The position numbers and the translations under genes are program-made. A stretch of 64,000 nt of DNA, from the NCBI RefSeq assembly GCF_000150275.1, contig NW_002060944.1, positions 3,614-67,613 of the forward strand. Direction: 5' to 3'. The notes below the pieces were generated by a model. The model ran no database searches. It was not told the DNA's origin and saw only the letters and a list, made by a program, of their open reading frames with translations. Below are positions 9,321 through 42,651 of the stretch, piece after piece. This stretch comes from Trichoplax adhaerens. Its lineage: Eukaryota; Animalia; Placozoa. Position 1 is the stretch's first letter. The number at the start of each line of letters is the position of its first letter.

Positions 9321-9384
9321 ATGGCATTACTATCTATTTTACTTTGGCATTTCGCATTCCTTTCTGGCTATCTACATGCCTCAG
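9321..9384 (+). CDS. Signal-peptide exon of LRR-GPCR 2
   Basis: ATG, hydrophobic 21-mer, CAG|GTATGA donor in phase 1, matching the phase-1 acceptor at 11559. Confidence 0.8.
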
Positions 9385-12300
9385 GTATGAAAATTTCGTT
9401 AACTTTTTATTTCGTACTTAACTACTACAAATACAAGAACGTAACAAGTAGTGTATATTCTAAGCAACTATGACATCTAATGAAACATTTTTTTCGACTT
9501 TCAATTCGGTAAAGTATGAATATAAACCAGTTACGAATTGTTCAATCTTCTTCAAGTATCTTGCTAATCAATATTTCAATAATGATGATGTACTATTGTG
9601 ATGTACTATAGTGATAAAATCCAATCACAAAAATTCCAAAGTTATAGAGAATTAAAACTTTATTAGATCGAATACAAAGACTAGCTACACATAGCTCTAC
9701 TCTAGCCGAATATAACTATTGAAGGACTTCTCGAAAGAACGAACTGAATAGTCTAAAGTTGCCGGCTTACATTCATTTCATGGTAGTCATAGCCACAATC
9801 AACATAGCAACAGTCTACCTTAATTTACACATAGTCAAATTATTATTATACCATCATTAATGCGATTAGGAAACAGCTACAGTATTTCCGTAGATATTAT
9901 TCTTAGCGGTCAAAGTACGGTAAACTAAGCATATCCTAATATATGAATTACAGTTCTATTTTTTTATCTCTAGCCTTAATAATAACTCAACACCGTACTA
10001 TATACTGTATAGTTATCTGTACTATAGCATAGAATCTACCATTACAGTCCACAGTAGTGAGCTACCAAAACACGTCTTAAGACAAATATAGAAAGTTACG
10101 CTTCCGTAAATCTTACTAACATAGCTAAAAGTCTACAATTACGATACTAAGTTTCATTAGAACTATCTAGATTAATGTACAGATACTTTTCTCAAGAATT
10201 GCCTGGTTACAGGACATCCTAAATATTAGTTATAAACCGTTGTCTAATGATCGATACAAGTCGATACACCTAGTTTTACATACTATAAGTCACAGAGATT
10301 AAATATTTAGTTTTTTTTAAGGTTATCTGAAATTTGCTGCTGATTCTAAACCACTTATTGCTACAATTTTGACCGAATACAGTTCGGATTGATTCGTGAT
10401 AGTTAGTCATACCGCGTTAGTGTGTAGTAGTATAGTACGTCTGTACTCATAATATTTAAATATTTGTACAACGTTACAGCAGTTGGTTTTTAGTGATTTT
10501 ACTCATTCGATTCTAGTCAGTCAACTCATCAGAGTTGCTGTTAGTAGTTGCCAGTTTACGGCAATCATTAGTAATTATAATTGCTTGAGAAGTCTAAGTG
10601 CCATCGTATGCGCTGTTTGATTTAGTTACGTTCAGTGGTGAGATCCATCGTGATCTATATGATCTCAGTTAGACCGTAAGGTCAAATAATATTCAGCGTT
10701 GTCTTGTATCATTCTTGATCTCAAATAAAGAGTAACCTAGGACTAACAGATATTGGCCAGGTATTGATTATTTGCGTAGAAGTAGTCCAATTAGTACATT
10801 AATCCGAGTAACTATAGAACTTTCCGTATCTGCGGATGAATTAGTTCTAATACAATACGTTAGATATACTGAACTGTAACACTTATATATATAAATTATA
10901 GCTTATTATTATAGGTAATCTAATATGTATTTAAATATCAAGACTAATATTTATTGGACATTTCTTCAAATTACATAGTTAACAATTGTTAGCCAGCATT
11001 GTATAGTGGCTCGTGAGCTTGCCAAGTTTAATCATTATTCAGCATTTATGCTATTGCGCGTGAAATGAATACAGCATGTATAATGATAAAGAAAATTTTA
11101 AATATAACATGGCCGATACGCATTAGGAGCAAGCTAGAGATATAAAGTTATAACATAAATATAAAATGAAAAAAACGTTATGCACTGCGTTTTATTGTAA
11201 ATAAAAATTCACAACTTTGATTATCATCAAGTCTAATTTCAAAACTTTCTACTATGAGTAAAGTTTCCACATCTATTGTATCTCAATTGCTTTGAATTAA
11301 ATCCGCGTTAAGAAGCGATTATTAAAGCCTTGGCAGTTCCTTACCATTACGTACTATAATAATAGTAACATAGTACTGTATAAAAATTTACGATAAAGGT
11401 AGTAGAATAGGTCATGGATAATAAATCTAGGTAATAGATATTTGGAAAGAGTGTTAAGATGGTATATTTAAGTAAATAAACCAACTGATTGCTGTATGCC
11501 CAGTGTCAATAATGAAATAAACTTTATATTTATACCTTTCCTTGCAACGGTGTAATAGTACTTCAATGTCCTCAAACTTGCACTTGCCCGAGTGCTTCGT
11601 ATATAGGCTGCACAGATGCAACCATGACTACTTTTCCAACTGCAAAAGTAATGATGGCTAACGTCACACAATTGTGAGTATATTACGACACTTTCACTAT
11701 AAGTGCACTTATCAAACTAAGATTTTAGCTACAATAAAAATCTTATCTAACTTAATTCACTTATGTAAGCAAGTGAGAACTATCTCTAAATTCAGTTTAG
11801 CCGTGATTTATACCTTATAAATGCAAGGCTTAAATATAAAATGTTATAATTTTTGAAAATAGAAGGATTACTGGCACCTTAATTTGGAAAGTTAATGAAA
11901 ATAGCCTATCTAATTATCCAAGCTTAAAATGGCTGTAAGTCAAACATAGTTATAGATACACCTACTAATACCTCGTTAATGTTAACTCACTAAGTCATCT
12001 CCAAATGATTATCACAAATAAATAAATGATCTAATTTATTAATAGATTTTCACTTCATGACTGATTTCAATTTAGATACTTGAACAAAAATAAAATACAA
12101 AAGATTGAAGATGGTGCTTTTGCAAGACTGTATAATTTACAAGTACTGTAAGTTAAAATAATGTAAGATGTGTTAATGGTTTCCCAGCGAGAATATTCTT
12201 AATTATTCTATTAATTTGAACTATTGCAAAATTGTAATTACTACAATTTGCAAGTTCTGTTAATCCTTTGCATACTAATCGCCCAACAGCGTCTTTGATT

Positions 12301-15300
12301 TCATATTATATTCATAAAGTGGCCTTAATCGAAATCTCCTAGAAGAATTGACGTCGCAGAAAATATTTAAAGAATTATCAACTTTAAGATCTTTGTGAGC
12401 TATATATATTGAACATTATTAATGAATAAATTTATTTTAAAGTCGTCAAATCCCCACGCATTTTATATCTTAGCCTTAATGCCACCATATGCATATAATA
12501 CTAAGTTAATGCTAATTTCTAATCTGGTTGTTAATGCTATAGTGTATATTTTATTTAAAAGGCTGTAACTGCTACAGATACCATAGCACTAAAGGTGTAT
12601 TTCGGAGGCAGATCACCTACAAAATCTGTATTTAAATAGTGTGAAAAAAATACGGCATAAGATACGTTACCATATGAAATATGCTATATTGACGATGATA
12701 CGGGGCTGATTCTATCAATTTAGATATCTGTCAAACAATAAGATACAAAGGATTGGTAATGGCGTTTTTTCAAGCTTACAAAAGTTGATGACACTGTAAG
12801 TTTCAAAAGTAACTTCCTGCTAAGATTTTTAATTTTTTAATCCCATGTAGGTCATCTATTCATATATTAATTCCTCGAAAAATTTTTGCATTAATAACTG
12901 GAAAACTGAAATAGGTGGTTACACCAAAATACGCTCAGTGGCATAGCTTCCAGGACGTTTGAAGGATTATCAAGTTTGAAATATTTGTAGGCTACTTACA
13001 ACTAAATTAATAATATCATCACCATTTTAATGCAGATAAAGTCATAAACATGCCATTCACTGCTTAATTCGATATTCTCTGTGATTTCTGCGCTGTATTA
13101 GTTGAATTATTATTAGCAATATTAAGTACTTGCACCTAGCCCTGATAATTCGGTAGTGAATTAAAAATTTATTTCATAACAGAATATTAGTATTGCAGAA
13201 AATGCTAAAAGAACTTGATTTTATTAAGTGATAGGCGAATAGCAAGATTAAACAGCAGCTTAACACTAGATAAAATAAATAAGAAGCAAAATTTTTTAAA
13301 CTATTTTTTCTAAATATAGATATATGTATAGCAATAAAATAGAAAGGATAGCCGATGGAGCCTTCGCAGACCTAGGTCAGCTTAAATTGCTGTAAGTCTT
13401 CGCAAGGTAGCATAATTATGCAGAACTGAACATCATATAGCAATGCAGGCAATAATTGCCTTCTAGATATAAATTTTTAACAATCAAAATTTCTAGAGGA
13501 TATTCATTTAATCAAAATGCATTATGTACTGTAAGTGGACTACATGCTAATCATTTTTGTACAGTTTACTCGAAAGCAAAAATTACGTCAAGAAGCATCA
13601 AGTGAATTAATTTTTAGATTTTGTACACTAGTATTTGATGTCTACCAATTACTGCAGAATCCACAAAAACTATTAATTTTATTTGCAATTCTAAGACGAT
13701 TTTTTCCATAGCTAACGATACTGTCAATGTTTCGCAAATGCTGAAAGAACAAAAATGATCATAACAACTTGATGCTACAATGGCATTCTTATTGGCAAAG
13801 AATATAATAACATAGAGACATTTAAAATAAAAAGCAGATCGCCCAATGCGAGATACTTATAGCACAAGAAAATGTTATACTTAGCATTATAGAATTATAT
13901 TCCTACTCCTTAGGTACTTTATAAATAGTATAATAGATGGATTAATTATAAGCAGAGTAATGAAAGCTTACAATATGCGGTAGTTGCATAATGAAATTTA
14001 TCAGAGATGAAATAAATTTTTTGCAGCTACATACAGTATGACATCAGAGATTTAATGAACTCCTTTCTAAACACGAAATTATCAATATGCTTTGATATGT
14101 AAAATTACACTATTATATATTATATTAAGAGTTTAAATGATTCTATATTAAGAACTAACATAGTTCGATGATGACAACTTTGCTAAACACTATACCTTCT
14201 TCAAAGATATTTTGAATGTAACGAATTTATGCTAATTAGTAATACAATATTTCATAGTTGAACATAGTAAACATCAAGGGGCAATATTAACAATATCTAT
14301 AGTCATTTTAGCAGATGTACTACTTGTTAAATGCCTAATCAAAACGGCTGAAATCAATCATTTTAGAGGGATAAGTAAGAATAATAAAGGTAATAGGTTT
14401 GCTTTAATTTCTAGATACTTAGATGATAACAAGATAGAAACGATTGGAGAGCAAGCCTTCACTGGATTAAATAAGTTACGGTGGCTGTAAGTTATCAAGA
14501 TTTGGAATGTATAATCTAATGTGCTATGTCAGTGCTCCAACTATTTCATGTTCATAATTATTATTTCAGATATCTATATTCAAATTCATTAGCTGTATTG
14601 AATTCAAAAATCTTTGGGGGATTATCAGAGCTGGAGATTTTGTAAGCTAAAACAGATACAGTGCCTTGATGTATACTGATTATTTGTATAATTTTGGAAA
14701 TTTCCGTTTTATTTTCGTACTAGCGATTGTACGATTATAATTAGTATATTAGCTAAGTATCATAATAAAGAAAATAATATAAGCAGAAAATTTTTTTATG
14801 CGAGACAATATTCTAAACTTGGTAGCTAAAATACCTAGATTAAACCGTCCTAAAAATACGAGTACTACACGGCAATCATGATTGCGACGCAAGTTATCGT
14901 ATTCTTTTCATTGATTTAGACATCTTCACAAAAATAAGATAGAAAAAATTGAAGACGGGGCATTTTTAAACCTATCTAACGTATACGAACTGTAAGCAAT
15001 TGTGAAGTACTTGTGCTTTTAACTTTTATGTACCATATAGTAACAATTTAAAGAATAATCTACAATAATTCTAAAAGAAATTAATAGTTCCTGACATTCA
15101 AGTGATCTTTTTGATATCAATATTATCCATAATAATCTTCTAATTATTAAAACAGACGGTTGGACGAAAACTTATTAAGTACCCTAGATTCTCCTAAAAT
15201 ATTCGAAGGACTTACAAATTTAAGAACTTTGTAAGTTATTCTGGCCATTGATGCTCACTGATTTAGAACAACTGATGATATTAGAGCAAATCTATCATTA

Positions 15301-18300
15301 ATATGAAGTATGAATTACGCAATATTTTGTAATATATTTTACGATTCGTATAGGTTCCTACTAGTGCTATAATTTTGTAAAGCCTTAATCATATTCATTT
15401 ATGTTATACAATATATTTACATAATTGGCCCAATTAGAAAATTTGAGTGATAAAATCTGATCACGAAAATTCAAAATTTGTAGAAAATTAGAACTTTATT
15501 AGATCTAATACAAAGATTAGTGACTCACAGCTCTACTCTAGCCAAATACAACTACTCAAAGACTTTTAGAAAGAACAATTAGATAATCTAATATCGCTTG
15601 CTTTTATAATCTAAGTAGCCTTCGCAGCTACAATCAAAGTAAAATGAATAACCATTTCCTAATAAATGATTCATAGTTCTATTTTTACCTTTAACTTTAT
15701 AGTAGTTCATCGTTCTACTGTATATTTATCTGTGCTCTAGCATAGAGTCTACTATTACAGTCTATAATTATAAGCTACAAAATATATCGTAAGATAAATA
15801 TAATAACTGCACTACCGTACATCATACTAAGCGTGGCTAATAATCTACAATCACATGACTAAGTTACTTTACAGTCTGCTATGATTTTGGCAGTAGGCAT
15901 TGTAAGTAGTGGAGTATCGTTGCGTAGCATTATGTAGTACACACCAATTATCCAGATATACAAAGTTATAATAATTTTAATATCTCTGTCACGGTAGTAA
16001 ATCTACCGTGATGAATGATAACTTACTTAATTTAGATATGTATATGTATCACGTTGAGATAGTTATTAATTTGGATATGTGCATGAATTATTTGATGACT
16101 TAATATAGCCGATACAAACCTGTTCCTAATACAGGTTAAATTATACTAAATATGGTATATGAATTGTCAATGGCAAATTCAATATAAATCCTGTTAATTA
16201 TAAGCTAGGGCAAACATAAAGTTAATCTATAGTAATACTAGTACAAACTCACGTCGCTTTGCTGACGGTTTACGATAATGTACCCATTTGTTAATAATTA
16301 ACAGATAGTTTCACCATTCGACATTATATATATCCCGGTAATAGCCAGGCACTACTATATTCACAGCGATGCTTCCAGAATACTACATTTTAATTATGCA
16401 TTCACAGATGAGATGCTGTGAGATGCTATACTAAGATTAGTTCATGGTCCAAAGCACATCATGATAACTAATGTACGGTGATGGACATACCAACTTAAGA
16501 TTACCAGGTACTGTGAGATATCGATAGTGCGGTACAATGTTCTTAATACTGTGGTCAATTATATACCAATCATTATAATGTGTCTAAGGATCGCTTGCGT
16601 ATGCAAGCAAAGCTTGCTCTGTCGATAACAACCGTTATAAGAAAATGTAACAATCAAAATGGCGGTGTAGAAAACTCTATAAAGATTCCATGTTTATTCA
16701 ATTTTCGTCAGAGAATTACATCAAATCAAAATTGAAAGGCCCAGTGGCCACCCTTAGCGATATAACGAATACTATTTAAAAAATCAGTACTCTGCAGAAC
16801 TTACTACCTTAGAGCTATTCGTTTTACACATGAAGAAATGTTGAGGTAAAAAGTACTGTAAGAATCTTATACTGGCTTAGAGCTATTCGTTTTACATGAA
16901 GAATTCTTGAGGTAAAAAGTACAGTAAGAATCTTATACTGACCTATTGGAATGAACCCATAATCACAGTCACCTAACAATAGTGTAAATACTCCCGCGCT
17001 GCTCGTTAAAAAAAAAGGGAAGGTTGTTGGGATTACAAATTCATTGGATTAGACTAGGAATAATTTAATGTATTCTCGAAGTCTTATTGGTCGAAATATA
17101 TCACACATCGCAAACCGGTTTTATGGCTAGAAAAGTTATTTAAATGATTGATTTTGAATATTAAATTAGACTTGCATTTTCCAGAAAAAAGATATAGTTA
17201 GAAGATTCCGAAAGTGCATTTCTCAGTTATTGTTACTTATCTAGGGTAATCTAATTAGTTTAGATTTGGCAACTTTGGTTAAGTAACAATCACAGTCAGT
17301 TTATAAGAACTATTTAGTTTAATTTGCAATATCTGGAATTTTTCGTACTGATAGCTAAACTGTTAATGATCTCTTCAGTTAAATAGCAAGAACAGTTAGC
17401 AATTAAATAAATTATAATTTGAGCCTGCAACAAAACCTGTTCTACTAATGATAATTAGAGTGTAGATCACAAAATTAATTTGATAATATCAGATTTCATT
17501 ACTAATTCTTTATCGATTGAGATGCTAGCTAACAGCACAACAGGCTCTGACAGACAAGAAAAATCTCCTATAATAGCAGATCTTAGAAAAGAAGGAATAA
17601 GACCAATAATAACAGAAAAGCGGTGCTTCTTAAATACGCTATCAAACTCGCTTGCAACATAATAATTACGAACACATTACTTAATACTTACAAAGTTTAG
17701 AATGAGAATAAAATTGTATGATTAGTATCATATTCTACGAAGCTGAAATCCACATACTTGAATTACTACATACATAACTTATATATACCTATTATTCTCA
17801 ACTGACCTAGATTTTGCCGTTATTTTTTAAGTTATATCTAATTCACCTCTACACGACATGTTGACAGCAACAGTTCATCTAACAGCTTCACTACAGTACC
17901 ATTAATTATTTCAATTGCTGAAGTATAAAAATACTTCTTTAATTGCGCATATTTTATTCGTTTCAACCAGCAATTTATTGGCAGGTAACCTATAGTGTTG
18001 GTCTAGTGATTGCTGTATGGTTTATTTATAATATTAATTTCTTGTACTATTTGCCGAAATATATCATGATACAGGACTAAAATAAATATTAGTTGCTAAC
18101 GTTTTGATAGTAGGCATTACTAGTATTGCAGTATCGCTGCATGGTACTGTATCAAGGTCGCCAATTACCGAGCTGTACACAATATAATTCACGATATCAA
18201 AGGCGAATAATAAGATTTATTCAGTCTAATTAGTATTATCAGATAGAAAGGACAGTTAGCAATAAAAATTTTAATTTGCACTATCAATTTTTCCAGCAAC

Positions 18301-21300
18301 TGAAGCACAAAATGGCTTTCCATTGAGCACGATTTAGTGATTTTAAACAGCAATTTATTAGCAGATAAATCTTTAGTATTTGCCAAACAACTGCTGTATA
18401 ATCTATTTTAAGGTTAATCACCGTAATAGTTACCGAAACACATCATGATAAAGGATAAAATAAATATTACCCTATGATGAACTAATACCAAGATAAAAAT
18501 AAAGTATTACCATTGCAAATATTTCTTAGTATGAAATATTACAACATAAGTAATCTTAACGATATAATTCTTGTATACTCATATATTGAGAAAAGCTTTA
18601 GACAGAATTTCTTTTAAAATTGCTACATTACAGATCTCTTGATCCAACCTTTCATTATGCTATACATTTAATTTTTCAGATATTTGAATAAAAACAGAAT
18701 ATCACAGATAGCTGATGGAGTTTTCATTCCTATAAAGCAAATAGAATATGTGTAAGTCTGTAATAGTGAAATTATCCAAGAAGAATTTCTCAATATTTTC
18801 GTGACTTAAGATTTATTGTTATTAACGGTTTGATGCGTATAAAAAATTTTAGACACGCCATTTATTACAATTTATATGTAATTCCAGTACTAAATCACAT
18901 TGCAAGCATTTCTACAAAATAATATATTCGTAAAGACATGTAATAGATAACTATGCTAGACATATTATTTGAAATTTTTTTCAAGCTCAACAACGCTATA
19001 TTATAATGTAAGATTTGCGCATTATTGTTTAAGAGATAAAGTAGATCTGTTAAAGAACTGTCGCAAAACAGCTTAGCAACAAGATAATGTAATGTACGAT
19101 AACCAAGTCAATTCCTTGAACCACGTATCAAGGAACGATATCTGCACTATCAGGAATGCTTTCGCTCTTCTAGCAGACTACGCAAAGACTTAGATGTCTC
19201 GTATTTTACGTTAAAAACTAAGTTTCAGAATTAACTTAATGATACGATATATTGTATTTATATACTCTTCCTCAATAGTTCATGAGTCATAGTTAGTACA
19301 CTTAACTTTAGAATCATTCACTGAATTAGACATTAATTTTAGCTACTGCTCCCTAATGCAGACAACAATGTTTACGAACATAGGCATCTGATGACTAATA
19401 CAGAATAGTCAGATTACGATATGTCCTATCACGAGACATTTCCACGATAATTTACAATCTACCATAAGTAAGTTACAATCACAATGATTCGAACTGTAAG
19501 TAGATAATACGCATTCCCTAATATAACTATTAATTTCAGTATTTATGTATATGTCACTGTTACATAAAGTAAGTGCTATATTAAAACACAGTACATCCAA
19601 ATTAAAAATTAATTAAATAAGGATATGCTAACAAAATTATCCTAGCATAGATATTTCTATTCTAATATAGTATATAACACTATCACAAGAACATATTATG
19701 ACGTCCGTTTTTAATTCATTAATTTAATATGTATAGTTGATTAAGCTAAGTACCTATCTTTATTTTAGAGATTATTATATCTGATTGTAGTTGTTGTCAC
19801 CATTGTAGAGTCAGTTTGTAAGTGTTGATTTCTTACCAGAGACGGAGAAGACCTTGACTAGCAGCAACGATTATGTAATTATTCGCGTAGGTCAAGGTCT
19901 CTTCTATCTTACTATTAGAAACAATTCTAAGACTAATATCTTTGCATGATCAGCTCAGAAACTAGTAAGAAAATATACAGTTCTAATACAACTTAGTGAG
20001 TAGATATGCTAGATTATAGAAGAGATAATGCGTTATGAAGCCGTCATGAAATAGATATTGTTTGCATGTCCTGAAAATGTAAATGTCTTAGTAATAGATT
20101 CAACGCAAAATTTCCTTTATTTACACAGCCTATCTCGTCATGTAACTATAATATGGCGATGTGCGTCTTTCAGTTTTTATTGTCCATTAAGTTAAAATCC
20201 TTTCATAAGCCACAATTATAATATGATTGTCACCCAATGATAACGTAACTTTCTTTTATACTTATATTGTAAAAATTTTCAATCTGCAGAAGACTGTCAA
20301 GAAATGAGATTCGCCGTGTACAGGACATTCATCTTAGTGATTTGATAAACTTAGGTCGAATGTAAGTTGTAAAACAAACTTATTTAACCACGAATGATAC
20401 ACCCTTGAAGATTGTATATCCGTTTAATCTTATTTTCAAAACTACAGTAAATTTCATACTTTTCAATTCTTAGATCGATATCGCGAAATAGACTTACCGA
20501 AATGCCCTCGGGAGCTTTTAGAAATATGACTAAATTGCGAAAAATGTAAGTCGCCACTTGCCGCAAATACCCTGGCGATACATTAAACAACACAGTACTC
20601 ATAGTAAATTTTACTTTAGTCCGCTAGACTACTTCTTTAACCTACGGTATTGTTACTGGAATATCTTTAAAATGCACACATTAAAACGGACAAAACAGAA
20701 TAACGCTCATATCTTACACACTATGTATGTTGATCATTATCTCGCTCATAAACACTATCAGTCGTAGTAGACAGATTTACTGCGCTATTAGCTTATTTGT
20801 AATAACAAATGTTATTACAGTTACTTTATCATACATGGATATTTTCAGGAACAAATAATTTCATACATAAGCATGTCTCGATTACGAGCTCTATCAATCT
20901 CCTACTTTTCAAATGCCCATTTGAGATGTATTACTGTTTTGTTATAATATTGTAAGGATTTACGCGCCTATCACTAACAACAATTCCTAAAGTAGCACTT
21001 TTTATTTCTAAAAAGTCAGAAACAAAACGTATTCTTAAACTATAAATCCATATCAGAGTCATTTTTATATCTGTGATGCAATGCTAATATATCAAGATGA
21101 TACTCAAACCATTTAACTATTTAAGAAAGACTAAAAATATGACTTTGCATTACTTTAGAAGGATGTTAATTTACGATACGTATCAATCATCGTCTTGACT
21201 AATTCTTCCATTGACTTTTCAAATATGCTACAGTATTCGTAATAACACTATTATATCTTACAAATAACTGTAGAAGAATACTGTGATTCTCAAGAATTAG

Positions 21301-27300: not shown

Positions 27301-30300
27301 TGGAAATCCCTTGTACTCTGTAGCTGATCTACCTTTAGGCAACTTCAAAATTCTTCAATACTTGTAAAAGAATTTACTAAATAATTTAATGCTTGAATGT
27401 TATTCTTAAAAATCGAAGCAGAATTGCGGTATATAACAATGATATCAGCATAACTTTATAACCTTATCTATTTCAATAGGGGACTATCGAAAAATAAATT
27501 GCGAAGCCTTAAAATTGCATGTCAATCGAACTTTACCAGCGACATTTTTAAATTGTAAATTGATATATTTCCTGATATTAATCTTGGCAAAATTTGAAAC
27601 CAATGAAGCATTATTTCACATACGTTTAAAATCATTAATAACAAAATTTTACTATAGAAATATCCTTTGCTAAGTTGCATTTGCCCTCATCAAAAACTGT
27701 ACTCAAGTTTAATCATACAATATTTGCGAACTGCTTTAACTGTTGCAGTTATGATAAAATAGTTGATACTTATAATAAACCATAGCAGTCGTATTTACTA
27801 TAAAAAAAATCCGGTATCAACATATTTATTTTTTCTGTCATAGGGATTTATCCAATAACTTGATGACTGAAATTCGAATTCCTAAATGTTTTCAATGCCT
27901 ACATCATATGTAAATTGATTTATTAGTAAATTTTTTAGTTGTATATTAAATAAAAATTGATTTATTCTGACAAAATAGAGCATCCATTGTTCTTTGGTAT
28001 ACATGTATTGTCGAGTTATGAAGTTTTCTAAACGTCGATATTTCTTGTGATATTAATTATGCCGAAATATATTTCAGCAACATCTCCAACAACAGAATTA
28101 ACAATCCTAGAAGTATATCTCTAAGCAAAATTTCTTGCACTTCATCAATGTAAGTCTTTCTCTTACCAGAATCAAAGCACCTTGTTCTCATTCGTTTTCG
28201 CTTTATAGTAAATTCCAATACCATGAAAAATTTGTATAAATCAGTGTATATTGATTCAATGTAATTCAACTTATTTAGGACAACATTATATAAATTTCAG
28301 TTTATCATCCACAATCATAAGCGTTAACTTTTATAACTAATGGTAATAAATTTTATATTTTATTTTAATCCGTTTAATTATTTTCTAGCGATATTAGTCA
28401 AAATAGAATCACTAGACTTGAGTCAGATATATTTTCTTCGCTTGAAGAGCCGCTATTAATCAGTGTCCTGTAAGTATTTATACATTCTATTTTACAGTAA
28501 GATGCAGTACTGCAAATGTTATCATAGATCATGCCTTGACCTTTTTCTCGCGTCTTGTTTTTGTTACACGTTCTTAAAACAGGAACATGTCCAGCAATCG
28601 TTTAGAGTATGTTAAATCTAAAGTGCTTCAACCAATATCAGGCTTAACGGAGCTGTACGTGTACATACTAACTAAGCTGTATGATACAGCACTAATAATA
28701 CTGAATACTAATTTTTACATGCATAAAATAAAATTTTATCAATCTATTAAGCTACTAACCGTTGTTTAGCATAATTATAAGAATAATATCCATTTAATAT
28801 AGCAGTTATAAATAGTACAAAACAAAACTGTAAAATCATAAACATATTTTTACTTATAAGAAGTATTAGTATTACAACTGATAAATATAAATAGCTAAAA
28901 ATTAGATATGTTTCAAAAATTATGTGACATATTAACCTTCGCTTTGATATAATTAGAAACATTCATGATAATCGTCTCGAAACATTAGATTTTATTCAAT
29001 TATTTCATCAACTGAATAGACTGTAAGTATTACTAGGTCTTCATGTTAAGTAATCTAGCTAATCTATACTTATATTTATATAACGATCTTAGCAATACTC
29101 ATAGTTTTGCCATCATATGTACATTTATCTACTATCAAATTAGTGTGGTCTCCAGAAATCGAGTTACGGATTTAAAAAGTAGCTATTTTAAAAACTCCAA
29201 GAATTTAACACATCTGTAAGAATTTATAATATATACTTTCTTGAATACAAGTGTAATAAATTACTGAAATTCACTGCGAATAGTAGCTACCTTGTAATCC
29301 AGAATAACATACTACATTCGTATAAATAACATTTTACGAAACTGAACGGTAATCCTTCTAAATCTCTATAAGATATTTAAGCTATAACAAGCTCCAATCT
29401 CTTAGAAATAGAACATTTATCAAGAGCGACAATATTCTATACCTGTAAGTTTATTGAGATTTATTGCATGTATAGAGTCTATGACAGCATAGACATGTTA
29501 TGAAAGGAATTTATTTTTGTAATTTTACCTCACTAGACAACATATATAACATTATTTCGGATCGATTTACTTTTTTAATCTGTCCTTATAGACAATTAGA
29601 TCATAACAAAATTTCGATAGTAGAAAATGAAGCATTTCTCGGTTTATCAAACTTGCTAACGCTGTATGTTATCGATTTTTACCTTTTAATGTGACACAAA
29701 CATATCCACTTTGTCGGTTATTTTATAAAAACAATAGCTTCATGAGACATGACGTTTAATCTACTAGGGACATCAGCTATAACCACATTATTTCATTGAA
29801 TGGGATATTTCCTCAAGATTTACACCGCCTAAATTCGCTGTATGGTAGCATTATGCAGTATTTATTCTATATTATTATTTACGCTAACTAGTTCTATTGT
29901 TAGACTTCATATAAAATGTAGAAACACCTGTAAACTGAATCTTTAATTGAAATTAGATATATAGCTGCTTAAAACAAAGAATACAACGATATTTTCACTT
30001 AGAATTTAATTTAAATGCTTATTTTCACTTCACTATTTAAAGTAACTGTGATGGAAATCAAATCTCTTCTATAGCTGGAGCTCCATTTTATAATTTAACA
30101 AAACTGACTAAATTGTATGTTTCATTATAAACTCTTCAGTCTATCAATATCAAGATTTAGTTAAGATTACTACTATACTAAACTGAATAATTTTTAAATA
30201 TCATAACATACCAATGAGCAAACTCTTCTTCTAGATCATTGAATCAAAATCACCTACAAGAAATTGCTAGTGACGGTTTTAGTAATCTGATTAGCCTGCG

Positions 30301-33300
30301 TTTACTGTAAGTATAGAACCTAAATTATTTATCGTATATAGAATCGACTAAATTGACTAAATATCAACTAAGCTATAGTCCAAAGTTACTTACTTAATCT
30401 TTACTGAATCTTTTCGTCTACATTTTGTAAGAACAGCTCGATAAATTATAATAAACTTACCCGCTTATCTTGTGAGTCCATTTTTGAAACCATTTATGAT
30501 CTGTAAGTGACATAGCTAATAAATTCATGTCAATTTGTAGTATTTTAAGTCATAATACGGCTATAGAGGCATTTAAGTAAGTTACTGCCAATAAATTGCC
30601 TGGTACTATTTCAAATTTATTCGATTGCAATACATTAGCGATAGTGCAGTGCTGTACTTTTCGCATTGGTTTGGCTTTCCTTACGCGTTGCATTTGAAAT
30701 TATTCGTTGTAGTGCAGCATCTCTTTTTTAATAATTAAGGAGAGGACAATCAAAACACTGAAAATATAATTAACGCGCTATCAAGAAGATATATTCACAG
30801 AAGTTTTTATACACTTTGTTCAAGATAAAATCAATTCGTAATGATAATTAAACTAAATGTAATCAAACAAGTTTCAAGGCGAAACATTATTCGATGTGTT
30901 TACACAGAGAATTGTTGTCGTCTTACTTAAAATAAATATACATCATAGTAATATTTACCTTCTTTATTGTATACATTCAGGAGGATAACTCATAACAATA
31001 TATCCTACATCTCTCACAGTTGTAACAAAACATTTGGCAGTTTATCACAGAGAATGTAAGTTATAATTAAGACTTTATCATTTTAAAACTTAAGCCAGTA
31101 TTAAGATATAAAAAAAATTAAATGCTGTATATGGAGTTATATATTTGTGATTAACCGATTATAAAAATCCAAAACTGGTAAAGAATTAGGACTTTATCAG
31201 ATCTTCATAATAAGATAATCTATGCAAAGCTCTATTCCAACCAAATACAACTACTAAGCACTTTTAGAAATAACCATTAGAATAATTTAAGTAGCTAGCT
31301 TGTATACTTATCGTAGCGTTCATAGCTATAATCAGCATAACATTCTACCTTATTTACTTATATCTAGATTATTATTAGTAATAATATTTTACAGCGAACT
31401 ATTAATCCAACATAGAAACTACTAGAGTAATTACATAGTGTCACTAAACAGCTTTAGTGATCTGGGTTGAACTGATCTATCTACTCTAATTAATCACAAA
31501 CTAACTCCAGTACGTGTTCTGTTCGGAAATTTCCAATAGTAGATAGTTGAGATAGACGACAAGGGTTCAGACAAATTAAGTCTTATTTATTATAAGCTAC
31601 TTCGTAAATTAGTACTAGTGTACTCTACAATAGTCTTAGCTGCAAACAAGGAGCATCAAGCTCCATAAGGCATAGACATTATTTCTATCCGTTAGAGTAC
31701 GATGAACTAACCATATTCTAATATGAATTCGTTACAGTGTTATACGGTGTAATATCCAGATTAGAGTAGAAAGATCTATTGCAATTCAAATTACTGTGAT
31801 TGCAACTTACTTATGGTAGATTGTAGATCATCGTGGGCATGTTCCGCGATAGGACATATTGTAATCTGACCATTTCTTATTAGTCATTAGATGTCTATGT
31901 TCGCAAATACTGTTGTCTTTATTAGATAGCCGTAGATAAAATTAGCTTTTGATTCATTAGAAGATTTCAACGTTAATATTACTATCTAGAATTTCTAAAC
32001 TACTGTAAAAGAGTATAGAAATGCCTCATATCGTACAATAAAGTTAGTTCTTTACATTAGTGTTCACCATGAAATACTGTACAAGTGTCACAAACCTGCT
32101 TCGTGACAAAGATAATGTAAAACAAATCTCTAAATTACTGTAGTCTCCGGTATTTAGTGTCCCTGAACTATCTCAGAAGAATTTAAATGCCTTCGCTTCT
32201 ACGTTATACAACTGTAGAACTCTGCTTTATTTAACTATCTGCCGAGCTTAAATACTCTTTGGTAGCTGCTATCATGTATGAGTCATAACGGTTCATGAAA
32301 TTTAGTTCATATTGGATAGCTAAATTAATACAGAAATTATTCATAATCTTAGACATGTACTGAATGATTCTAGATAATTAGATTACAGTATGTCCATACA
32401 CAGAATTATTTATAGTATCCTCTACAATTGAATATCTTCAGAATATTCATCACAAGCGTTACAAGATATAACACTATAATCAATTAACATTAGTTACCTT
32501 ATAAAAACTCTTACTACAGTAAAGCATAATTTATTGCAACAAACTAATAACTACCGTAGTTCTTACTGTAAGTCATTATTAGCTATCTCCATATATAAAT
32601 ATTAACCACTAAATTTAGTCATTTACTCTTCACGATGGTTTGTACCGTAATAACAAGACTTTTATGTCTTTGTGTAGTCTACTAGTATAGGAAAAGTGTT
32701 CCTGATAGGGTGGATGTTGCTCCCTGATACGTGGTTTAGTCAATCGACTTATTGATCCTACATTACGTTATCTTGTTGCAGAGCTGCTGTGTAACAGAAT
32801 TACAGTTCTATTTTTACCTCTGACCCCAACGGTAACTCGATATATTGTATATAGTTATTTGTACTCTGGCATAGAATTTCCACCACAGCCTATGGTCATG
32901 AGCTATCAAATATGTCTCAAGATATCTATAGAAAGCCATACTACTGTACACTTTACTAAACACGGATAATAATCTAAAATTCCAATACTTAGCTATGTTA
33001 CAACATTATAGTTTTATGCCCTATTACTGAGCTAATTCTTTACAGAAAGTAACCTTTCAGTCATCATGTATTATTTTATCTGTCACGAAAGCAGTCTTCG
33101 TGTAATTTATTTTATTTCTATGTAACGTTCTATATATGTTTATATCTCAGAAATATTTACGGTTTCCTTAATTGTAACTCTAGTAGCTAACAAAGAATAT
33201 ATTAGTAATCCTTACTTTAAGATCAGATAGACTAAGATAGTAATTACCAACTAGTTGAAATAGATTGTATCTATAACCTCCAATAATGTTAAGGTTAAAA

Positions 33301-36300
33301 ATACAATTTCTAAGTTTAGACGAAATATCTTATTAAGATAGCCTAATATGTGTTTTTAAACTATTATTAAGGATTGGATAATTAATACTGAAAATACAAT
33401 AAATTTGATAGGATTAGACTGTGTTTAATCTGTACTAATAGAGGTTCTAATTAAAAGCTAAAGCTGTTACTAGCTCGTAATATTATGTTATACGTATATG
33501 AGGTAGAAGTTTACAAAATTACTTTGTCTTCAATTACAGAGATATCAGTTACAATAATTTGGTACGAAATGGAATTAGAGTAGAAGAACAAGTTTTATTT
33601 AAATTATTAAAGCTGCCTCCTGCTATGTAAGTAATTAATAAATGCTAATTATCAGATAATAGGACGCTTCAGTTAATTGCTACCATAAAGTGAAATAATT
33701 TCTGGAGGCTAATTCTTGTTCTTTAAATTTATAAAATGTAAATAGACTTTTGGCAGGAAACAACATTAAATCTATTCCAATGTCATTCTTAAAATGGAAT
33801 CTCTATATCAGAACATTGTGAGTAAATGACATAGCAATAAACTTATAAATAACCGATTGATAATGAGAAGAGAATATTAATAAATCTAAAACTGGTTAAG
33901 AATTTACCGTAAATATAGCAAATCGATAGCTTATTATGATAATGTGTCATCTCGGATACGTAACAAGAACTACAGTTTCTTGTAAACTCCACCTTATTAC
34001 GTAAGATTATGTTCGTCTCACAACCACCAAGAAATATCTGACTGCAATCAGACTATCCAAATTATCACAGCGATACTCATGATTTATATACAATTCGCCA
34101 CGCAATGATCTTCCTTCGAATACAATCATATCGTACCAATTAAGTTACAAGACCATATCTAAATTTACTAATGCGCTATCAACTCATAATTCGCACTTCT
34201 AATTTAAAGTGTCACAATACAAATTTCACAGTACTAAGATACTTAGCGCTATCTATTATTGTCTCAGAATCTCAATATAAGCATCTTAATACAATTACTA
34301 CAATAAGTACTGTAAACATCTTGCACAAATAGTCAGTTAAGATAATCTTACACTCTTACTTACAGTTTAATTTAAACTATTCTCATACAATCTTGAATAG
34401 TAATTTAAGCTATATTTGGTGCTGCACTACACTTATACTACAAATTATCTTCGCTAACATCATTGAAATGTTGCTAAGATAATGATAGAGATCTGCTTAC
34501 TAATTAAGGTGATCTCCATGGCATGCTATCAAAAATGATTTGTACGAATAATATTTATTGAAAAAATATTAATGTTAAAAATTGTACAGCTTATGTGAAG
34601 TCTTTTTCTTGCAAATCAGAAGTAATCTTAACGATTATCCTATTATGTTCTCAATCTCTAGTTCTATTGGTAGTAATAATATGTCACTATCTGCAATTGA
34701 ACAAGCTATGCGAGGTCTTTATATCGCCGATGTATGCGTACCACCTAAAATCTACCGTTATTTAGAATATTATAGCTGTAACCGTTATTCACTGTAAGTG
34801 AACAAGTTGTCAATAATTCTCACATAACCAGTGATTTACTTACTCCTAATTACACGTCCATAATTCCTACCTATATCTAACGAGCATTGTAATGCCGCTT
34901 TTTGCAAATTATTAATCTTATGCTCTATTTTACGTACGCTTAATTTGATCAGAGACTTAAGCGATAGCAGGCTAAACAAAATTCCTTCTGGCAGCTTCGT
35001 TCACCTTAATGGCTTATTAAGAGTCTTGTAAGTCGATTTAGCTAACCTAAGTTATTAGCTACAGTTTAAAGATCTAAAAAATGCTTAAGCACATACACGT
35101 ATCCCGTTGCTAACTTTCAATTTTATTTTTTAATAATTACATCCGGTGTATGTATCATTGATCAATATTCTTACAACTCGCTTTTGCAATAATACTTAAC
35201 AAAACGTAAATAGCAATAGACCTGAAAATTTTATTCGAGATTGTATCTTACATAAAACTTTCCGCTTATATCTTATTTGCATAACAGAAAATTAAATAAT
35301 AATTATATCAAAACTATTGATGCATCAGCCATATTTCGAGATAGTGACAGCAATTTACGAGAACTGTGAGTTTATTACTTATAATTGTCATGAATAGATA
35401 TCCGAATAGGATTGATAATTTTAATAAAATGATCGGTTTCATACGATATGCCTTTTAAATGTAACGCGGTATGATTATTTCATACGCTAGCGCATAACTG
35501 CTCTCATAAAAGCTGTAGAAATATTGAATGCTGACTGAATATCTATTGCATACTGATTTAGTCATTTGGCCAATAATGAAATATCGAACTTTACTAATCC
35601 AAGCAAAGTGCAATTCGTTGCCTTAAGATTACTGTAAAGTAAAACATTTCCTGTAGACTAGTTTTATAAATTATAGAATTATAATAGTACTAATCAGGCC
35701 ATATTTTATTTACTATATAGCAATTTAACTCGAAACAGACTGGCTAATATCTGCGGAAGATCGGAGTTATTAGGAGTTGCTTCCAATTTATTGGAAATGT
35801 AAATTGCCATTTTCCAATATATTCTTTGTTAGAATAACATAAATCTGATATTCAGTTTGCTTGCAAATCTACAGATATTTAGATTTCAATCAAATTAGAG
35901 TGCTAAAACCTAGATGCTTTGGCACCCTCTTCAAGTTACAGACACTGTGTGTGTTATCATTAATAATAATTTAGGGAATGATAGAATTATTTTCATTTGG
36001 TATAGATAGCATCTTTAATTTATAGACTATAGATGAAGTCTAGTAGTTTAAATAGTAATACTTATTCCTTTCACTTATCTACTGAGTCAATACATCGTAC
36101 ATTTCTTAATTATTTCTTTCAGATCCATCAAATCGAATCCATTAGTAACTTTACAGGATATCTCATTTTATGGTTCTACAACGTTAGGCTCAGTGTAAGC
36201 TGTCATGTTTTATTAATTAAGTTCTATAACAGTTTCTTAATTTTTAATAACATCTTGTAGTAAATTTTGTAAGTGAATATTCTATTTTTATCACTCAACA

Positions 36301-37890
36301 TTAACATATAGAGCTTCTACGCGTGCATATTTATGCTGCATTGTTCCTGCTAAGATTACTACTTGCTCGCCAGCTCCTGATTTAGATTCGGCTTCGAGTT
36401 GTGAAAATATTCTCGCTCACACCTCTTTACAACTAGCTGTTTGGATTATGGCTTTAGCTGCCTTTATAGGAAATATATTAGTCATCGCTAACAATCGTTC
36501 TAATAAAAATCGCAAGATAAGTAAAGCAACTGAATTGGTCTTTACCAATTTAGCCATATCCGATTTCTTAATGTCTCTCTATCTAATCATCATTGGTATT
36601 GGCGATTTTGTTTATCGTGATCGTTATGCTCAATATTCTGAAGAGTGGCTTCGCAGTCCAGCCTGCGTTGTTGCATCATTTTTAATATGTACATCAAGTT
36701 TAATGTCAGTTCTTATGATGTTATTTATTGGTATCGATCGTTACTCAATTGCTTCGAATCCATTTTTAGCATCAGATACAAGATATAAAAGGACTAAAAT
36801 ATCACTACTATTAGGATGGTTACTAACAAGCATTTTCGTAGGTATACCTATCTCTATGGGTATTGATGAACCTGGTGATAGACGTTTATATCAATTTAGT
36901 TCAATTTGCACTCCAAGTAATTTAAGTAACAATTTCTATGCTGGCTGGACAATCGCGTTTGTTGTACTCCAACTTGTATGCTGGATGCTAACTTTAACAC
37001 TTTACCTTAAGTTGGTAGCGACGGTCAATAAAACACAGCGTTCTGTTCGTAGCAGTGCTCAATCGCGCAGCTTTGCGGTAGCTATCCGAATATCGCTAAT
37101 TCTAATAACGGATTTAATGGCTTGGTTACCAGTTTATGTTATTTCTGTTATGTCGATCATCCAAGGTACTCTAAATGTATTTATACTGCAATTCGCCGTC
37201 ATTTTAGCTATCCCCCTGAATTCAGCTATTAATCCATACATTTATACCGCTACTGGAACAGCTTGCTTTAACCGCTTAACATCTACGAATAAATCAAAAT
37301 CAGTTTATTCTTCAACAACACGAAATATTTCCATGCATCAGAATAGCACGTATGGTAATAAGCAGAAGCGTACGAGAGTTGCTCCTTTTTCCAAATATGA
37401 AACTATTATAAACGAAGACGTCGGTGATTCTACTTCCAAAGCTATTAATGATGGGTATCAAGCAGAACCTAATCAGATTAATAATAGTACGACTATCCGA
37501 ACAGCTAATCAGAAAACAAAAATTTCCTGTAATGAAATAACGACTACTGCTATCCATTGTGCTCCGGATGCTGCCTTCTTATTAAGTATGCAAAGAAATA
37601 AAAGGTACAGCGCACCTTCATGCGTACTTGCCGACATGTTAACTACAAGCTGCGATCATACCATATCTCATGAAGCGAATACCAAAAAATACTTAATAAT
37701 AGATGTAAGTAATTTCGCACAAACCCATAAAGCCAAAAATGCATCTTCGACGAGTGACAGAGCTGCTACGTCCGAACTTGGTATCATAAATCCCGTATAT
37801 GATGAGGATAAAGGTCAGAATGTTAAGCCTGTTCATAATATGCTAGAAAATTTTAGCTGTAAGGGCAGATACAAGCCATCATTTATGTAA
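9321..37890 (+). CDS. Giant LRR-containing GPCR 2: signal peptide + LRRNT + ~55 LRRs + hinge + 7TM + tail, 58 exons, ~1938 aa
   Basis: Exon 1 9321-9384 MALLSILLWHFAFLSGYLHAS; exon 2 11559-11673 LQCPQTCTCPSASYIGC (LRRNT). LRR exons start at 11863, 12076, 12320, 12724, 12915, 13320, 14415, 14570, 14920, 15156, 18680, 20290, 20474, 21567, 22548, 22731, 22909, 23108, 23580, 23757, 23908, 24079, 24276, 24729, 25050, 25270, 25877, 26211, 26627, 26852, 27010, 27292, 27480, 27844, 28078, 28389, 28583, 28957, 29144, 29373, 29592, 29768, 30043, 30235, 30437, 30981, 33540, 33746, 34662, 34953, 35288, 35562, 35721, 35875, 36123. Last exon 36312-37890. All are AG/GT bounded and sum to 5817 nt, divisible by 3. 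Confidence 0.85.
9611..10152 (+). repeat. Intronic interspersed repeat family A, copy 1
   Basis: Shares aactttattagatc, cagctctactctagcc, agttctatttttta and tagcataga segments with 15447-15865, and its 3' part with 32797-32995. Confidence 0.8.
11559..11673 (+). CDS. LRRNT cap exon of LRR-GPCR 2
   Basis: CPxxCxCxxxxxxxC motif between a TAG acceptor and a GTGAGT donor. Confidence 0.88.
13467..13530 (+). pseudogene. Probable decayed LRR exon (64 nt, frameshifting)
   Basis: ttctag acceptor and ct|gtaagt donor typical of the LRR exons; core tcaaaatttctagaggatattca resembles tcaaaaatctttgggggattatca of exon 14570; lies where the alternating exon pattern lacks one member. Confidence 0.4.
15447..15865 (+). 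repeat. Repeat family A, copy 2 (internal deletion)
   Basis: Collinear with 9611-10152 but about 120 bp shorter. Confidence 0.8.
16808..16940. repeat. Two-copy tandem repeat, ~66-68 bp unit
   Basis: cttagagctattcgttttaca...gaggtaaaaagtac(t/a)gtaagaatcttatactg at 16808 and 16876. Confidence 0.92.
17968..18469 (+). repeat. Local direct repeat, ~120 bp (17968-18090 and 18348-18469)
   Basis: Both run cagcaatttatt(g/a)gcag ... ccgaaa..atcatgata..gga..aaaataaatatt. Confidence 0.75.
18936..19007 (+). pseudogene. 72-nt LRR pseudo-exon with in-frame TGA
   Basis: aag acceptor, exactly 72 nt, at|gtaaga donor; reads HVIDNYARHII*NFFQAQQRYII, similar to intact exon 23757-23828 HILDNYVLNLTSTAFKGSHQIDT. 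Confidence 0.6.
19310..19507 (+). repeat. Repeat family B, copy 1 (inverted relative to 31772-31968)
   Basis: For example gtcagattacgatatgtcctatc...acaatctaccataagtaagtt is the near reverse complement of aacttacttatggtagattgt...gataggacatattgtaatctgac. Confidence 0.85.
31772..31968 (-). repeat. Repeat family B, copy 2
   Basis: Reverse complement aligns by eye along ~195 bp with 19310-19507. Confidence 0.85.
32797..32995 (+). repeat. Repeat family A, copy 3 (3' part)
   Basis: gaattacagttctattttt...gcatagaat...gagcta...tatagaaag matches ~9945-10150. Confidence 0.75.
33930..34335 (+). repeat. Repeat family C, copy 1 (inverted relative to ~42138-42520)
   Basis: taacaagaactacag, gttcgtctca, taccaattaagttacaag and catatctaaatttacta all occur reverse-complemented and collinear at 42140-42520. 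Confidence 0.85.
36312..37890 (+). CDS. Hinge + 7TM + C-tail exon of LRR-GPCR 2
   Basis: YLCCIVPAKITTCSPAPDLDSASSCENILAH hinge, then ORF 36448-37890 with LAISD, DRY, WLP and NPYIY motifs; close paralogue of 1916-3662. Confidence 0.93.
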
Positions 37891-39199
37891 TATTTACTCT
37901 AATGGAGAAAAAGATAAAGAGCAATATTCGAAACCAAATAAAATTCACTACAGAAACATGAAAAATCAAGGTTGCGCATTCCTTTTATATTGTAATAATG
38001 CACTTCCTTCTGCTTTACCCTAACTAATCATCCAGTAATAAATCTTATAATGTAGTGGTTTAAAATAGATTATTACTTAAAAGTATTGTTGAATATTACA
38101 GTCGTAGAACTCATGACTAATGCAACTGCACATACGTAATTAGCACTCAGATTAATTATCGGCTGAACTTCTCTCTAAGAAGTCAGCCTTTTAAATCCTT
38201 CTAAAGGAATGTTAACAAATGTGTTCGCAAATGTTTTTCCGTAGTCAATTCAACTAAAAACCTAACTTAATCTATAGTTTCCCTTGTATTACTCAGTACG
38301 TAGTATGGCTCCTTTAGATACATGATTCCTAACTAGGTATAATTGCCATTCCTCACCGTGAGCCAATTATACACAAGTTGCTGAAATACGCTAATACCGC
38401 TTACCGAGGCGCCTTCAGTCTTACTTAAAGTTACAGCTATTGTCTCCTATAATCACTCACTAATAGTGGATGACTATTTTAACACCTAAAGTGATCCTTG
38501 ACGCCACTAATCCACTCAGATTAAGCGCTACTAGTTCTGATGACTACCGCGGTTTTCCTGTAAAACCTTTTTTCCTTTGCACATCAACATCATTTATTTC
38601 TCTTAAAGTCTAAATATATTATTGTTCTAATTGAAATTTTATCCATCCACAGGTGGACAAACTACAAGATACAATAATGTTGCTTTACGAAGAAGTAACT
38701 CTTGGTAATTCCTTTACGAAAATTGCATCCCATGGAACTCCCATTGCACATGCATAAAGCTAAAAAAATACTTCATTAATTATTTCGCACTTTCTTTAAT
38801 ATTCAATCTTAATAGCATATATCTAACTAGATAATTAATCAGACTGGATTATTTGCACTAATTGTAATCAACTTTTCAATATCCAGCCGTATTCAATTTT
38901 TATACTTATTAAGTTAGCATCGAATACAAAATACACAACTAATACTAGTACCAAAAATACTACATCTGTACCATTCTATATGATCTCATACAGGATTTCC
39001 ATTCCGTAACTTTTTATGGCGTTAAAATATGTACTACTTCTTCAAATAGCAATTTTAGCATAAGCAATGACAGCTTAATACAAATTTTAATTAACATATC
39101 ATTAATTACTATTTTAATACAATTGTGAGGTGCCTATGTAATAAAATGTATAAGCTTCATCTACAGTTTACCTTTTCTACATTGGAATAAGATTGTCAT

Positions 39200-42137: not shown

Positions 42138-42520
42138 TTCTATTTGTAGAAGACGTTTACCGTACGTATTGTAGTAATTGCATCGAGATACTTATATTAA
42201 GATTCTGAAATAATAATAGATTGTGCTAATTATGTTAGTAGTGTGAGATATGTGTTGTGAGGCTTTATTTAGAAACACAAATAATGCATTGATAGCGCGA
42301 TAGTAAATTTAGATATGAACTTGTAACTTAATTGGTAAGATATGATTTTATTAGAAGGAAAATCATTGCGTTACTAATTGTATATAAATTGTGAATATTA
42401 CTATAATAATTTAGATAGTCCTTGGTAGTTATGAGACGAACCTAATCTTATGTAGTAAAACGAAGTTTGCAAGAAGCTGTAGTTCTTGTTATACTTTAGA
42501 GAAGGCACTTTATCACATAC
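42138..42520 (-). repeat. Repeat family C, copy 2
   Basis: Reverse complement of 33930-34335. Confidence 0.85.
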
Positions 42521-42651
42521 CGCATGGAGTATTACTAATTTAACATCAATTCTAGATTTAAGTAGTATATACGAGTAATATTTTAAGCGTTTTTAACAAC
42601 ACATACTAGCAGTTGTCTACTAATACCAAAGAGCCAATTATTGTAACACAG

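Follow-up and report, generated by a model that had tools for sequence, protein, structure and literature searches.

The stretch of DNA analysed here (the window) comprises 64,000 nucleotides of the placozoan Trichoplax adhaerens (RefSeq assembly GCF_000150275.1, contig NW_002060944.1, positions 3,614 to 67,613 of the forward strand). It is AT-rich eukaryotic DNA of ~30% G+C, and it carries on its + strand, from 9321 to 37890, a 28.6-kb gene of 58 exons for a G-protein-coupled receptor (GPCR) with an exceptionally long leucine-rich repeat (LRR) ectodomain. When joined, the 58 exons give one reading frame of 5,817 nt whose sole stop is the terminal one, encoding 1,938 aa. A signal peptide comes first, followed by one LRRNT cap, by 55 exons with a single LRR each (exons 3-57) and by one exon for the hinge, the seven-transmembrane (7TM) domain and the tail (Table 1).

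The LRR exons were sought in the window by a scan for segments that are bordered by AG and GT, are open in phase 2-2 and show an LRR pattern. Most are 72 nt long (41 of the 55), the others measuring 75 nt (five), 78 nt (three), 66 nt (three) and 81, 87 and 132 nt (one each), and all 55 are in phase 2-2, so that the skipping of any one of them would be frame-neutral. The donors are GT throughout (GTAAGT in 23 of 57), the acceptors TAG, CAG or AAG, and the median intron is 168 nt. No stop or frameshift was found within any of the 55 LRR exons, and the interval between exons 2 and 58 is free of internal stops, of ATG/signal exons and of a further LRRNT exon. The original prediction for this locus, made from the sequence alone, had described about 55 exons, mostly of 72 nt (range 66-132) and all in phase 2-2, each encoding one LRR, and these features were confirmed in every detail; the single signal/LRRNT pair and the single hinge-7TM exon that it placed at the two ends were likewise recovered in the exon model and by an LRRNT scan. 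As a control for chance, a stricter scan (exactly 72 nt, AG/GT borders, open, LxxNxLxxL) returned 37 exons on the + strand of the gene, compared to a mean of 0.06 in 50 shuffles, and none on the - strand or elsewhere in the window. The consensus of 41 repeats, LxLxxNxIxxIxxxxFxxLxxL, is that of the 24-residue ‘typical’ LRR, and the ectodomain of ~1,450 aa contains 20 N-glycosylation sequons. Exon 1 has a counterpart in an ATG exon that resembles it in 8 of 14 residues and lies ~1 kb upstream of the LRRNT exon of a close paralogue (paralogue A, see below).

Table 1. Exons, long introns and a doubtful segment of the receptor gene (window positions)
Feature	Position	Strand	Remarks
Exon 1	9321..9384	+	ATG and hydrophobic signal-like peptide, 21 aa plus 1 base; ends in phase 1
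Exon 2	11559..11673	+	115 nt, phase 1 to 2; LRRNT cap with C-x3-C-x-C ... C cluster
LRR exons 3-8	11863-11934, 12076-12147, 12320-12394 (75 nt), 12724-12795, 12915-12986, 13320-13391	+	
Doubtful segment, left out of the model	13536..13601	+	66 nt, phase 2-2, open; weak LRR pattern, weak acceptor, GTGAAT donor
LRR exons 9-12	14415-14486, 14570-14641, 14920-14991, 15156-15230 (75 nt)	+	Partly covered by RNA joints
Long intron 1	15231..18679	+	3,449 nt, removed in RNA; high-copy repeat DNA at ~16200-16800
LRR exons 13-15	18680-18751, 20290-20361, 20474-20545	+	RNA joint 18751>20290
LRR exons within 16-48, 72 nt (starts)	21567, 22548, 22731, 22909, 23108, 23580, 23757, 23908, 24079, 24276, 25050, 25270, 25877	+	
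LRR exons within 16-48, 72 nt, continued (starts)	26211, 26627, 26852, 27010, 27292, 28078, 28583, 29144, 29373, 29592, 29768, 30043, 30235	+	
LRR exons within 16-48, odd lengths	24729-24806 (78), 27480-27554 (75), 27844-27909 (66), 28389-28469 (81), 28957-29022 (66), 30437-30502 (66), 30981-31055 (75)	+	
Long intron 2	31056..33539	+	2,484 nt; dispersed ~565-bp repeat at ~32086-32648
LRR exons 49-57, irregular membrane-proximal block	33540-33626 (87), 33746-33817, 34662-34793 (132, two-Cys loop), 34953-35027 (75), 35288-35365 (78)	+	
LRR exons 49-57, remainder	35562-35633, 35721-35798 (78), 35875-35946, 36123-36194	+	
Exon 58	36312..37890	+	Cys-rich hinge, seven TM helices, 214-aa tail, stop

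The hinge-7TM exon resembles those of glycoprotein-hormone and relaxin receptors

Exon 58 matches the Pfam family 7tm_1 over its full profile (1-260, E 5.6e-22), and the 7TM domain carries the motifs DRY at residue 1555 and NPYIY at residue 1720. Ranked against the structures of the PDB, the exon is closest to RXFP1 (7tmw, E 6e-30), followed by TSHR (3.6e-23), LHCGR, FSHR and LGR4, and it matches the beta-2 adrenergic receptor at only 1e-11; the alignment with RXFP1 begins already in the hinge that precedes TM1. Because its nearest solved structures are these five receptors, we class the gene, on sequence grounds, as an LGR-type (leucine-rich repeat-containing GPCR) receptor with a relaxin-receptor-like hinge. 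The rest of the architecture agrees with this assignment, as a signal peptide, a cysteine-bearing N-cap, LRRs and a Cys-rich hinge precede a rhodopsin-type 7TM domain, each LRR occupies a small phase-2 exon, and hinge and 7TM domain share one large exon. Its 55 LRR exons do not agree with the LRR numbers of the bilaterian LGR types A, B and C. The LDLa module is absent from the model, whose residues 1-60 hold the signal peptide and LRRNT only, the upstream DNA not having been profile-scanned for an LDLa exon.

Among database proteins, exon 58 is 100% identical to a protein of the window’s own genome (T. adhaerens) and 99% identical to a 791-aa partial ‘GRL101-like’ protein (P0001) of Trichoplax sp. 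H2. The next matches are paralogues from T. adhaerens and H2, and these are followed at ~30% identity by relaxin-receptor-like and GRL101-like proteins of sea urchin and coral; the named relatives in the databases are relaxin receptor 2-like and GRL101-like.

Splicing joints in RNA connect neighbouring exons

RNA reads were examined over 14400-20399, that is, over 6 kb of the 28.6-kb gene, in two metatranscriptomic runs of the same study (X6 and X9), the assembled contigs of which have a depth of ~5 and derive from a strain that is 95-99% like the window. Two other runs (X4 and X5) were rejected as sources of RNA: their contigs cross introns and behave as DNA, despite a word share (0.27-0.29) that matches the exon fraction. 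In X6 contigs the GT..AG joints 14486>14570 and 14641>14920 connect exons 9, 10 and 11, and the joint 15230>18680, also GT..AG and with 72 letters on its shorter side, reveals that the 3,449-nt long intron 1 is spliced out; the joint 18751>20290 occurs in both X6 and X9. One X6 contig of 295 nt (contig 17) has exons 12 and 14 as its listed pieces, with exon 13 placed between them by the joints and the positions in the record. This contig has spare letters, 12 on the exon-11 side and 64 beyond exon 14, that would correspond to exons 11 and 15, respectively, and the 64-67 letters by which X6 and X9 contigs both run past 20361 are likewise attributable to exon 15. Six exon-exon joins, five of them listed joints, are thus shown or implied for exons 9-15, all of them between neighbours, and no exon-skipping joint is among the joints listed for these exons in the X6 and X9 contigs.

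Further downstream, 15-19% of the words sampled from 27891-37890 recur in the two RNA runs, and 25% of the 31-mers of this interval are wholly exonic. The share fits transcription of most exons of this interval in a slightly diverged strain. We conclude that the gene is real and transcribed. The original prediction had read the locus as one giant LRR-GPCR and had pointed to transcripts ending or starting in the two long introns as the sign of two separate genes. For 15231-18679 an RNA contig crosses the intron, and together with the lack of a second signal/LRRNT exon or of a stop this joint upholds the reading as a single gene. With regard to the second long intron (31056-33539), a gene boundary is disfavoured because the intron contains a dispersed repeat, because the equivalent intron measures 186 nt in another close paralogue (paralogue E), because an H2 gene model of yet another paralogue (P0006) joins the exons equivalent to those flanking it, and because neither a stop nor an ATG/signal or LRRNT exon is present.

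The order of exons 13-57 is fixed in four paralogues

The 7TM exon has 93 matches in the T. adhaerens genome, mostly in tandem clusters, and eight of them reach at least 67% identity. We applied the same exon scan to four close paralogues (A, C, D and E), taking 40 kb of upstream sequence for each, the counts leaving out two paralogues on contig C1410 and ~45 more distant ones. All four share the design of the window gene, with ~55-56 LRR exons in A, 47-49 in C, 65 in D and 57-59 in E, and in A, D and E one LRRNT exon each was found ~300 nt before the first LRR exon. Exons 13-57 of the window gene, including exons 16-48 (21567..31055), correspond one to one and in unchanged order to exons of the paralogues, and the odd lengths are kept in place (78, 75, 66, 81, 66, 66, 75, 87, 132, 75, 78 and 78 nt). 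The positional partner was the best match for 44/44 exons in A, 43/45 in D, 37/43 in E and 40/44 in C, and the median amino acid identity was 69% to the partner in A versus 39% to the most similar of the remaining exons of the window gene.

Variation in exon number is confined to the N-terminal block, a series of repeat pairs that alternate (exons 4-12), with 3-4 exons in C, 9 in the window gene, 10 in A, ~13-14 in E and ~19-20 in D; exons 3-8 form the opening of this region of alternating repeat types and variable exon number. No recent duplicates were found among the N-terminal block exons of the window gene. The original prediction had proposed to count LRRs across the paralogues. In the four examined, the counts revealed giant arrays throughout (~47-65 LRRs), in keeping with the expectation of a very long ectodomain, but the exons did not behave as variable cassettes, since exons 13-57 are fixed.

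Several other observations concern the paralogues. The 3' end of a tandem paralogue lies on the + strand at window positions 291-3400, with a 7TM exon 74% identical to that of the studied gene (C1413:5530-6522) and final LRR exons (291-362, 448-525, 616-687 and 882-953) that match exons 54-57; the contig begins 3.6 kb further upstream and cuts this paralogue off, four more LRR exons lying there (L048). In paralogue E, two consecutive LRR exons occur twice, 706 nt apart and with 100% identical exon sequence (L044-L047, joined 13608-13866 and 14314-14572, at ~C1384:411007-411971), which represents either a very recent tandem duplication or an assembly artefact; a crude comparison of the whole units at a fixed offset, in which the introns are not properly aligned, gave 66% identity. 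Broken copies of the 7TM exon are present elsewhere in the genome. In metagenome contigs from ENA with related 7TM exons (L049 and L050), the sequence upstream is short and the exon scan found no LRR exon in it, and a scan of metagenome contigs with P0001 for spliced transcripts gave no match.

The LRR exons evolve under purifying selection

Comparison of the 42 length-matched exons with those of paralogue A gave a dN of 0.20 and a dS of 1.13 (ω = 0.18). By position, ω was 0.05 for the core, 0.23 for the variable residues of the concave face (LxxLxLxxN) and 0.28 for convex and other residues. Judged from these ratios, the LRR exons are under purifying selection. The original prediction had suggested dN/dS at concave-face positions as a test of diversified ligand binding, and no excess of change relative to paralogue A was found there, although with dS at ~1 or more, near saturation, the test is a blunt one.

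At closer range, the H2 locus L001 aligns with window positions 23546-40337 at 98.7% identity. Differences between the window (H1) and H2 affect 0.76% of the sites in exons and 1.28% in introns, with 17 synonymous and 15 non-synonymous codon changes. The splice sites of all 38 covered exons are kept in H2, and the 37 LRR exons among them are intact. The sole coding indel, a 1-nt deletion in H2 at 37847, lies in the C-terminal tail, and as a result the H2 model extends 133 nt further, to window 38023, and differs in its last part. Beyond the gene, the alignment jumps from 40337 to 44656: the 4.3 kb of 40338-44655, which near their start contain a 228-bp tandem repeat (40601-41206, 2.7 copies, 93% match), are lacking in the H2 contig, having been either inserted in H1 or deleted from H2.

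Repeats and exon-like segments in the introns

The dispersed ~565-bp repeat by which long intron 2 is inflated (32086-32648) is spread over many contigs: a first look gave 1,535 candidates, and at least 40 copies were scored, with identities of 86-90%. It is probably a non-autonomous transposon; copies are also found in the upstream regions of paralogues E and C (C1384:408734 and C1384:498520). At 16200-16800 and 19000-19600, read depth in all four runs exceeded that of the flanks by a factor of tens to hundreds and loose ends were numerous, and the two regions look like high-copy repeat elements in the long introns. The joints 16236>17032 and 16356>16759 suggest that shorter copies of such an element exist elsewhere.

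An exon-like 72-nt segment at 18936-19007 has AG/GT borders and an in-frame stop. It is skipped in both RNA contigs, which join 18751 directly to 20290, and no counterpart was found in the equivalent introns of the four paralogues. The intron after exon 8 holds the doubtful segment 13536-13601 (Table 1), and no remnant of the extra exon of paralogue A was found in it.

Public protein sets hold fragments of the receptor

The H2 annotation represents the gene by two pieces, namely P0001, which covers exons 49-58 and starts mid-repeat at window position 33541, at the start of exon 49, and a 72-aa fragment corresponding to exons 31-33. The longest related protein in the databases (P0028) has 1,270 aa and ~33 LRRs. 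A representative-library search with P0001 returned no relative of at least 50% identity that is longer than 510 aa, cluster representatives not necessarily being the longest members of their clusters. The full receptor seems absent from the public protein sets searched, and the 58-exon model is supplied here for a receptor that those sets hold only as fragments.

Interpretation

Taken together, the ordered RNA joins, the positional identity of the exons in the paralogues and an ω of 0.18 lead us to favour, at a probability of about 80%, one constitutively spliced Trichoplax gene that encodes a 1,938-aa orphan LGR-type class-A GPCR with 55 position-specific LRRs in a fixed ectodomain. The exon chain, its open frame, its conservation and a part of its splicing are direct observations. 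The 55 repeats would be position-specific parts of one solenoid, and by analogy with the solved LGRs a protein or polymer ligand may be bound on this solenoid, with the hinge relaying the signal to the 7TM domain and the G protein. The symmetric phase-2 exons probably go back to the exon design of ancestral LGR genes, which duplication of exons has multiplied; the 45 repeats nearest the membrane were presumably fixed before the paralogues split, with the N-terminal block alone still changing in number from gene to gene. By the general geometry of LRRs, an array of this length cannot stay flat and would have to spiral or kink, and the irregular exons, including the 132-nt exon with its two-Cys loop, are candidates for breaks in the array. 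Several points count against this picture: (i) neither a cDNA nor a protein model of full length was found, the public proteins that reach 50% identity being at most 894 aa long; (ii) direct RNA joints cover only 5 of the 57 introns and come from low-depth contigs of a strain 95-99% alike; (iii) for exons 1-9 and 15-58, the junctions are supported by frame, conservation and the H2 gene models; and (iv) the segment 13536-13601 could be an optional exon. In a bolder version, the ectodomains of 55-65 repeats would wind without a break into LRR superhelices with over two turns, longer than the LRR array of any other GPCR, and would sense polymers on the surfaces of microbes or algae in a multivalent manner, with specificity tuned by the copy-variable N-terminal block and possibly with some regulated exon skipping. 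This version strikes us as a long shot; Trichoplax is without canonical Toll-like receptors (PMC6321704).

The original prediction had raised the possibility of a cassette library, in which skipping of symmetric exons yields many isoforms, as in Dscam or the VLRs in concept. Regulated skipping to this effect has been proposed for brown-algal ROCO genes, and Dscam makes isoforms in a like manner with its Ig exons. For the window gene we consider a cassette library unlikely. It is true that all LRR exons are multiples of 3 in phase 2-2 and that skips would keep the frame, that the number of N-terminal block exons differs between paralogues, that 72-bp phase-2 LRR exons with several splice variants have a precedent in Ectocarpus ROCO genes (PMC11378527), and that assembled contigs drop rare variants, so that minor isoforms could go unseen. 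However, the six joins across exons 9-15 run from neighbour to neighbour and no skipping joint is listed; the exons are individual (every one of the 44 compared is closest to its positional partner in A, and the median identity to the best exon within the gene is 39%); odd lengths stay in place; concave-face positions show no excess of change (0.23 versus 0.28); the introns are short with strong donors; and ordinary gonadotropin receptors have the same exon design. Since that design is inherited from LGR genes, frame-neutral exons are not evidence of a combinatorial system, and with ordered joins across exons 9-15, exons 13-57 fixed in four paralogues and purifying selection the library reading found no support. 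Somatic assembly of the VLR type was also considered and rejected, the germline gene being complete, with ordinary introns and an uninterrupted frame.

A division of the locus into two or more genes, an upstream LRR protein (secreted or separate) and a shorter LGR starting after a long intron, would account for the H2 annotation of exons 49-58 (partial) and of a separate 72-aa fragment, and the joint 31055>33540 was not obtained in RNA, the reads having covered 14400-20399. We nevertheless hold such a division to be very improbable, as the 15230>18680 joint is present in RNA, a stop, an ATG/signal exon and a further LRRNT are all lacking between exons 2 and 58, intron 2 is repeat-inflated and has a 186-nt equivalent in paralogue E and a join of the equivalent exons in P0006, and P0001 is itself flagged partial and begins within a repeat. 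The array might instead be partly dead, with pseudo-exons or a decaying duplicate and a real product of far fewer repeats, akin to the stop-bearing 18936-19007 and the doubtful 13536-13601 in the introns and to the broken 7TM copies elsewhere. This is barely credible for a gene whose 55 LRR exons show no stop or frameshift, whose 37 H2-covered LRR exons are intact, whose exons are less diverged than its introns at an ω of 0.18 versus paralogue A, and whose stop-bearing segment is skipped in RNA.

Comparison with known receptor systems

The original prediction had regarded the locus as a candidate for an undescribed system, a view that the literature does not support: the placozoan LGR expansion was published in 2022 and the exon design is that of ordinary LGRs. 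T. adhaerens has 46 LGRs, 41 of them placozoan-specific, with a hinge of their own and an ‘unusually high number’ of LRRs (Hauser, Koch and Grimmelikhuijzen 2022, PMC9545775). In that study the placozoan clade is placed outside types A-C, the example Tadh-LGR-15 has 34 LRRs, and the LRR numbers are given as 7-9 for types A and C and 14-18 for type B. By similarity and architecture rather than by a tree, the window gene appears to belong to this placozoan-specific clade, with which it shares the species group, the class-A 7TM domain, the clade’s own Cys-rich hinge and the unusually long LRR ectodomain, and from whose published example it differs in having 55 LRRs (~47-65 in the four paralogues versus 34); the table of PMC9545775 gives TriadITZ identifiers only, to none of which the window gene was matched. 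Other full-text literature searches returned no further description. The gene is therefore an extreme, under-annotated member of a published placozoan receptor family.

The type-C receptors RXFP1 and RXFP2, of which RXFP1 is the best solved relative of the hinge-7TM part, likewise have one LRR per exon, but they carry ~9-10 LRRs compared to 55 and are ~30% identical, and the LDLa module is absent from our model. FSHR, LHCGR and TSHR share the small exons (~69-78 nt), the phase 2 of all introns and the one large exon for part of the hinge, the 7TM domain and the tail (FSHR exon sizes from PMC6281744; PMC11378527), whereas they have 9-10 small exons as opposed to 55 LRR exons and a different hinge type. 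That all introns of gonadotropin receptor genes are in phase 2 and that their small exons are single LRRs is stated in PMC11378527, which cites Koo 1991 and Kobe and Deisenhofer 1994.

The nearest published cassette model is that of the brown-algal LRR-ROCO genes, where a 72-nt phase-2 exon also encodes each LRR and the loss or gain of an exon is frame-neutral. For these genes PMC11378527, and Zambounis 2012 as cited there, describe exons that resemble one another and are shuffled, concave residues under positive selection, and an annotation with several isoforms. They encode cytoplasmic GTPases, unlike the window gene, which encodes a GPCR with positionally fixed exons, purifying selection and ordered joins in shallow contigs. 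The receptor is of interest for LRR structural biology and for placozoan sensory biology. It raises the questions of what shape such an array takes, which ligands need such length, and why dozens of these receptors are kept in a nerveless animal with simple behaviour. Set against the known LGRs, the window gene and its paralogues make up a placozoan subfamily with 47-65 position-specific LRRs, beyond the 34 quoted for Trichoplax and the 7-18 of bilaterian LGRs.

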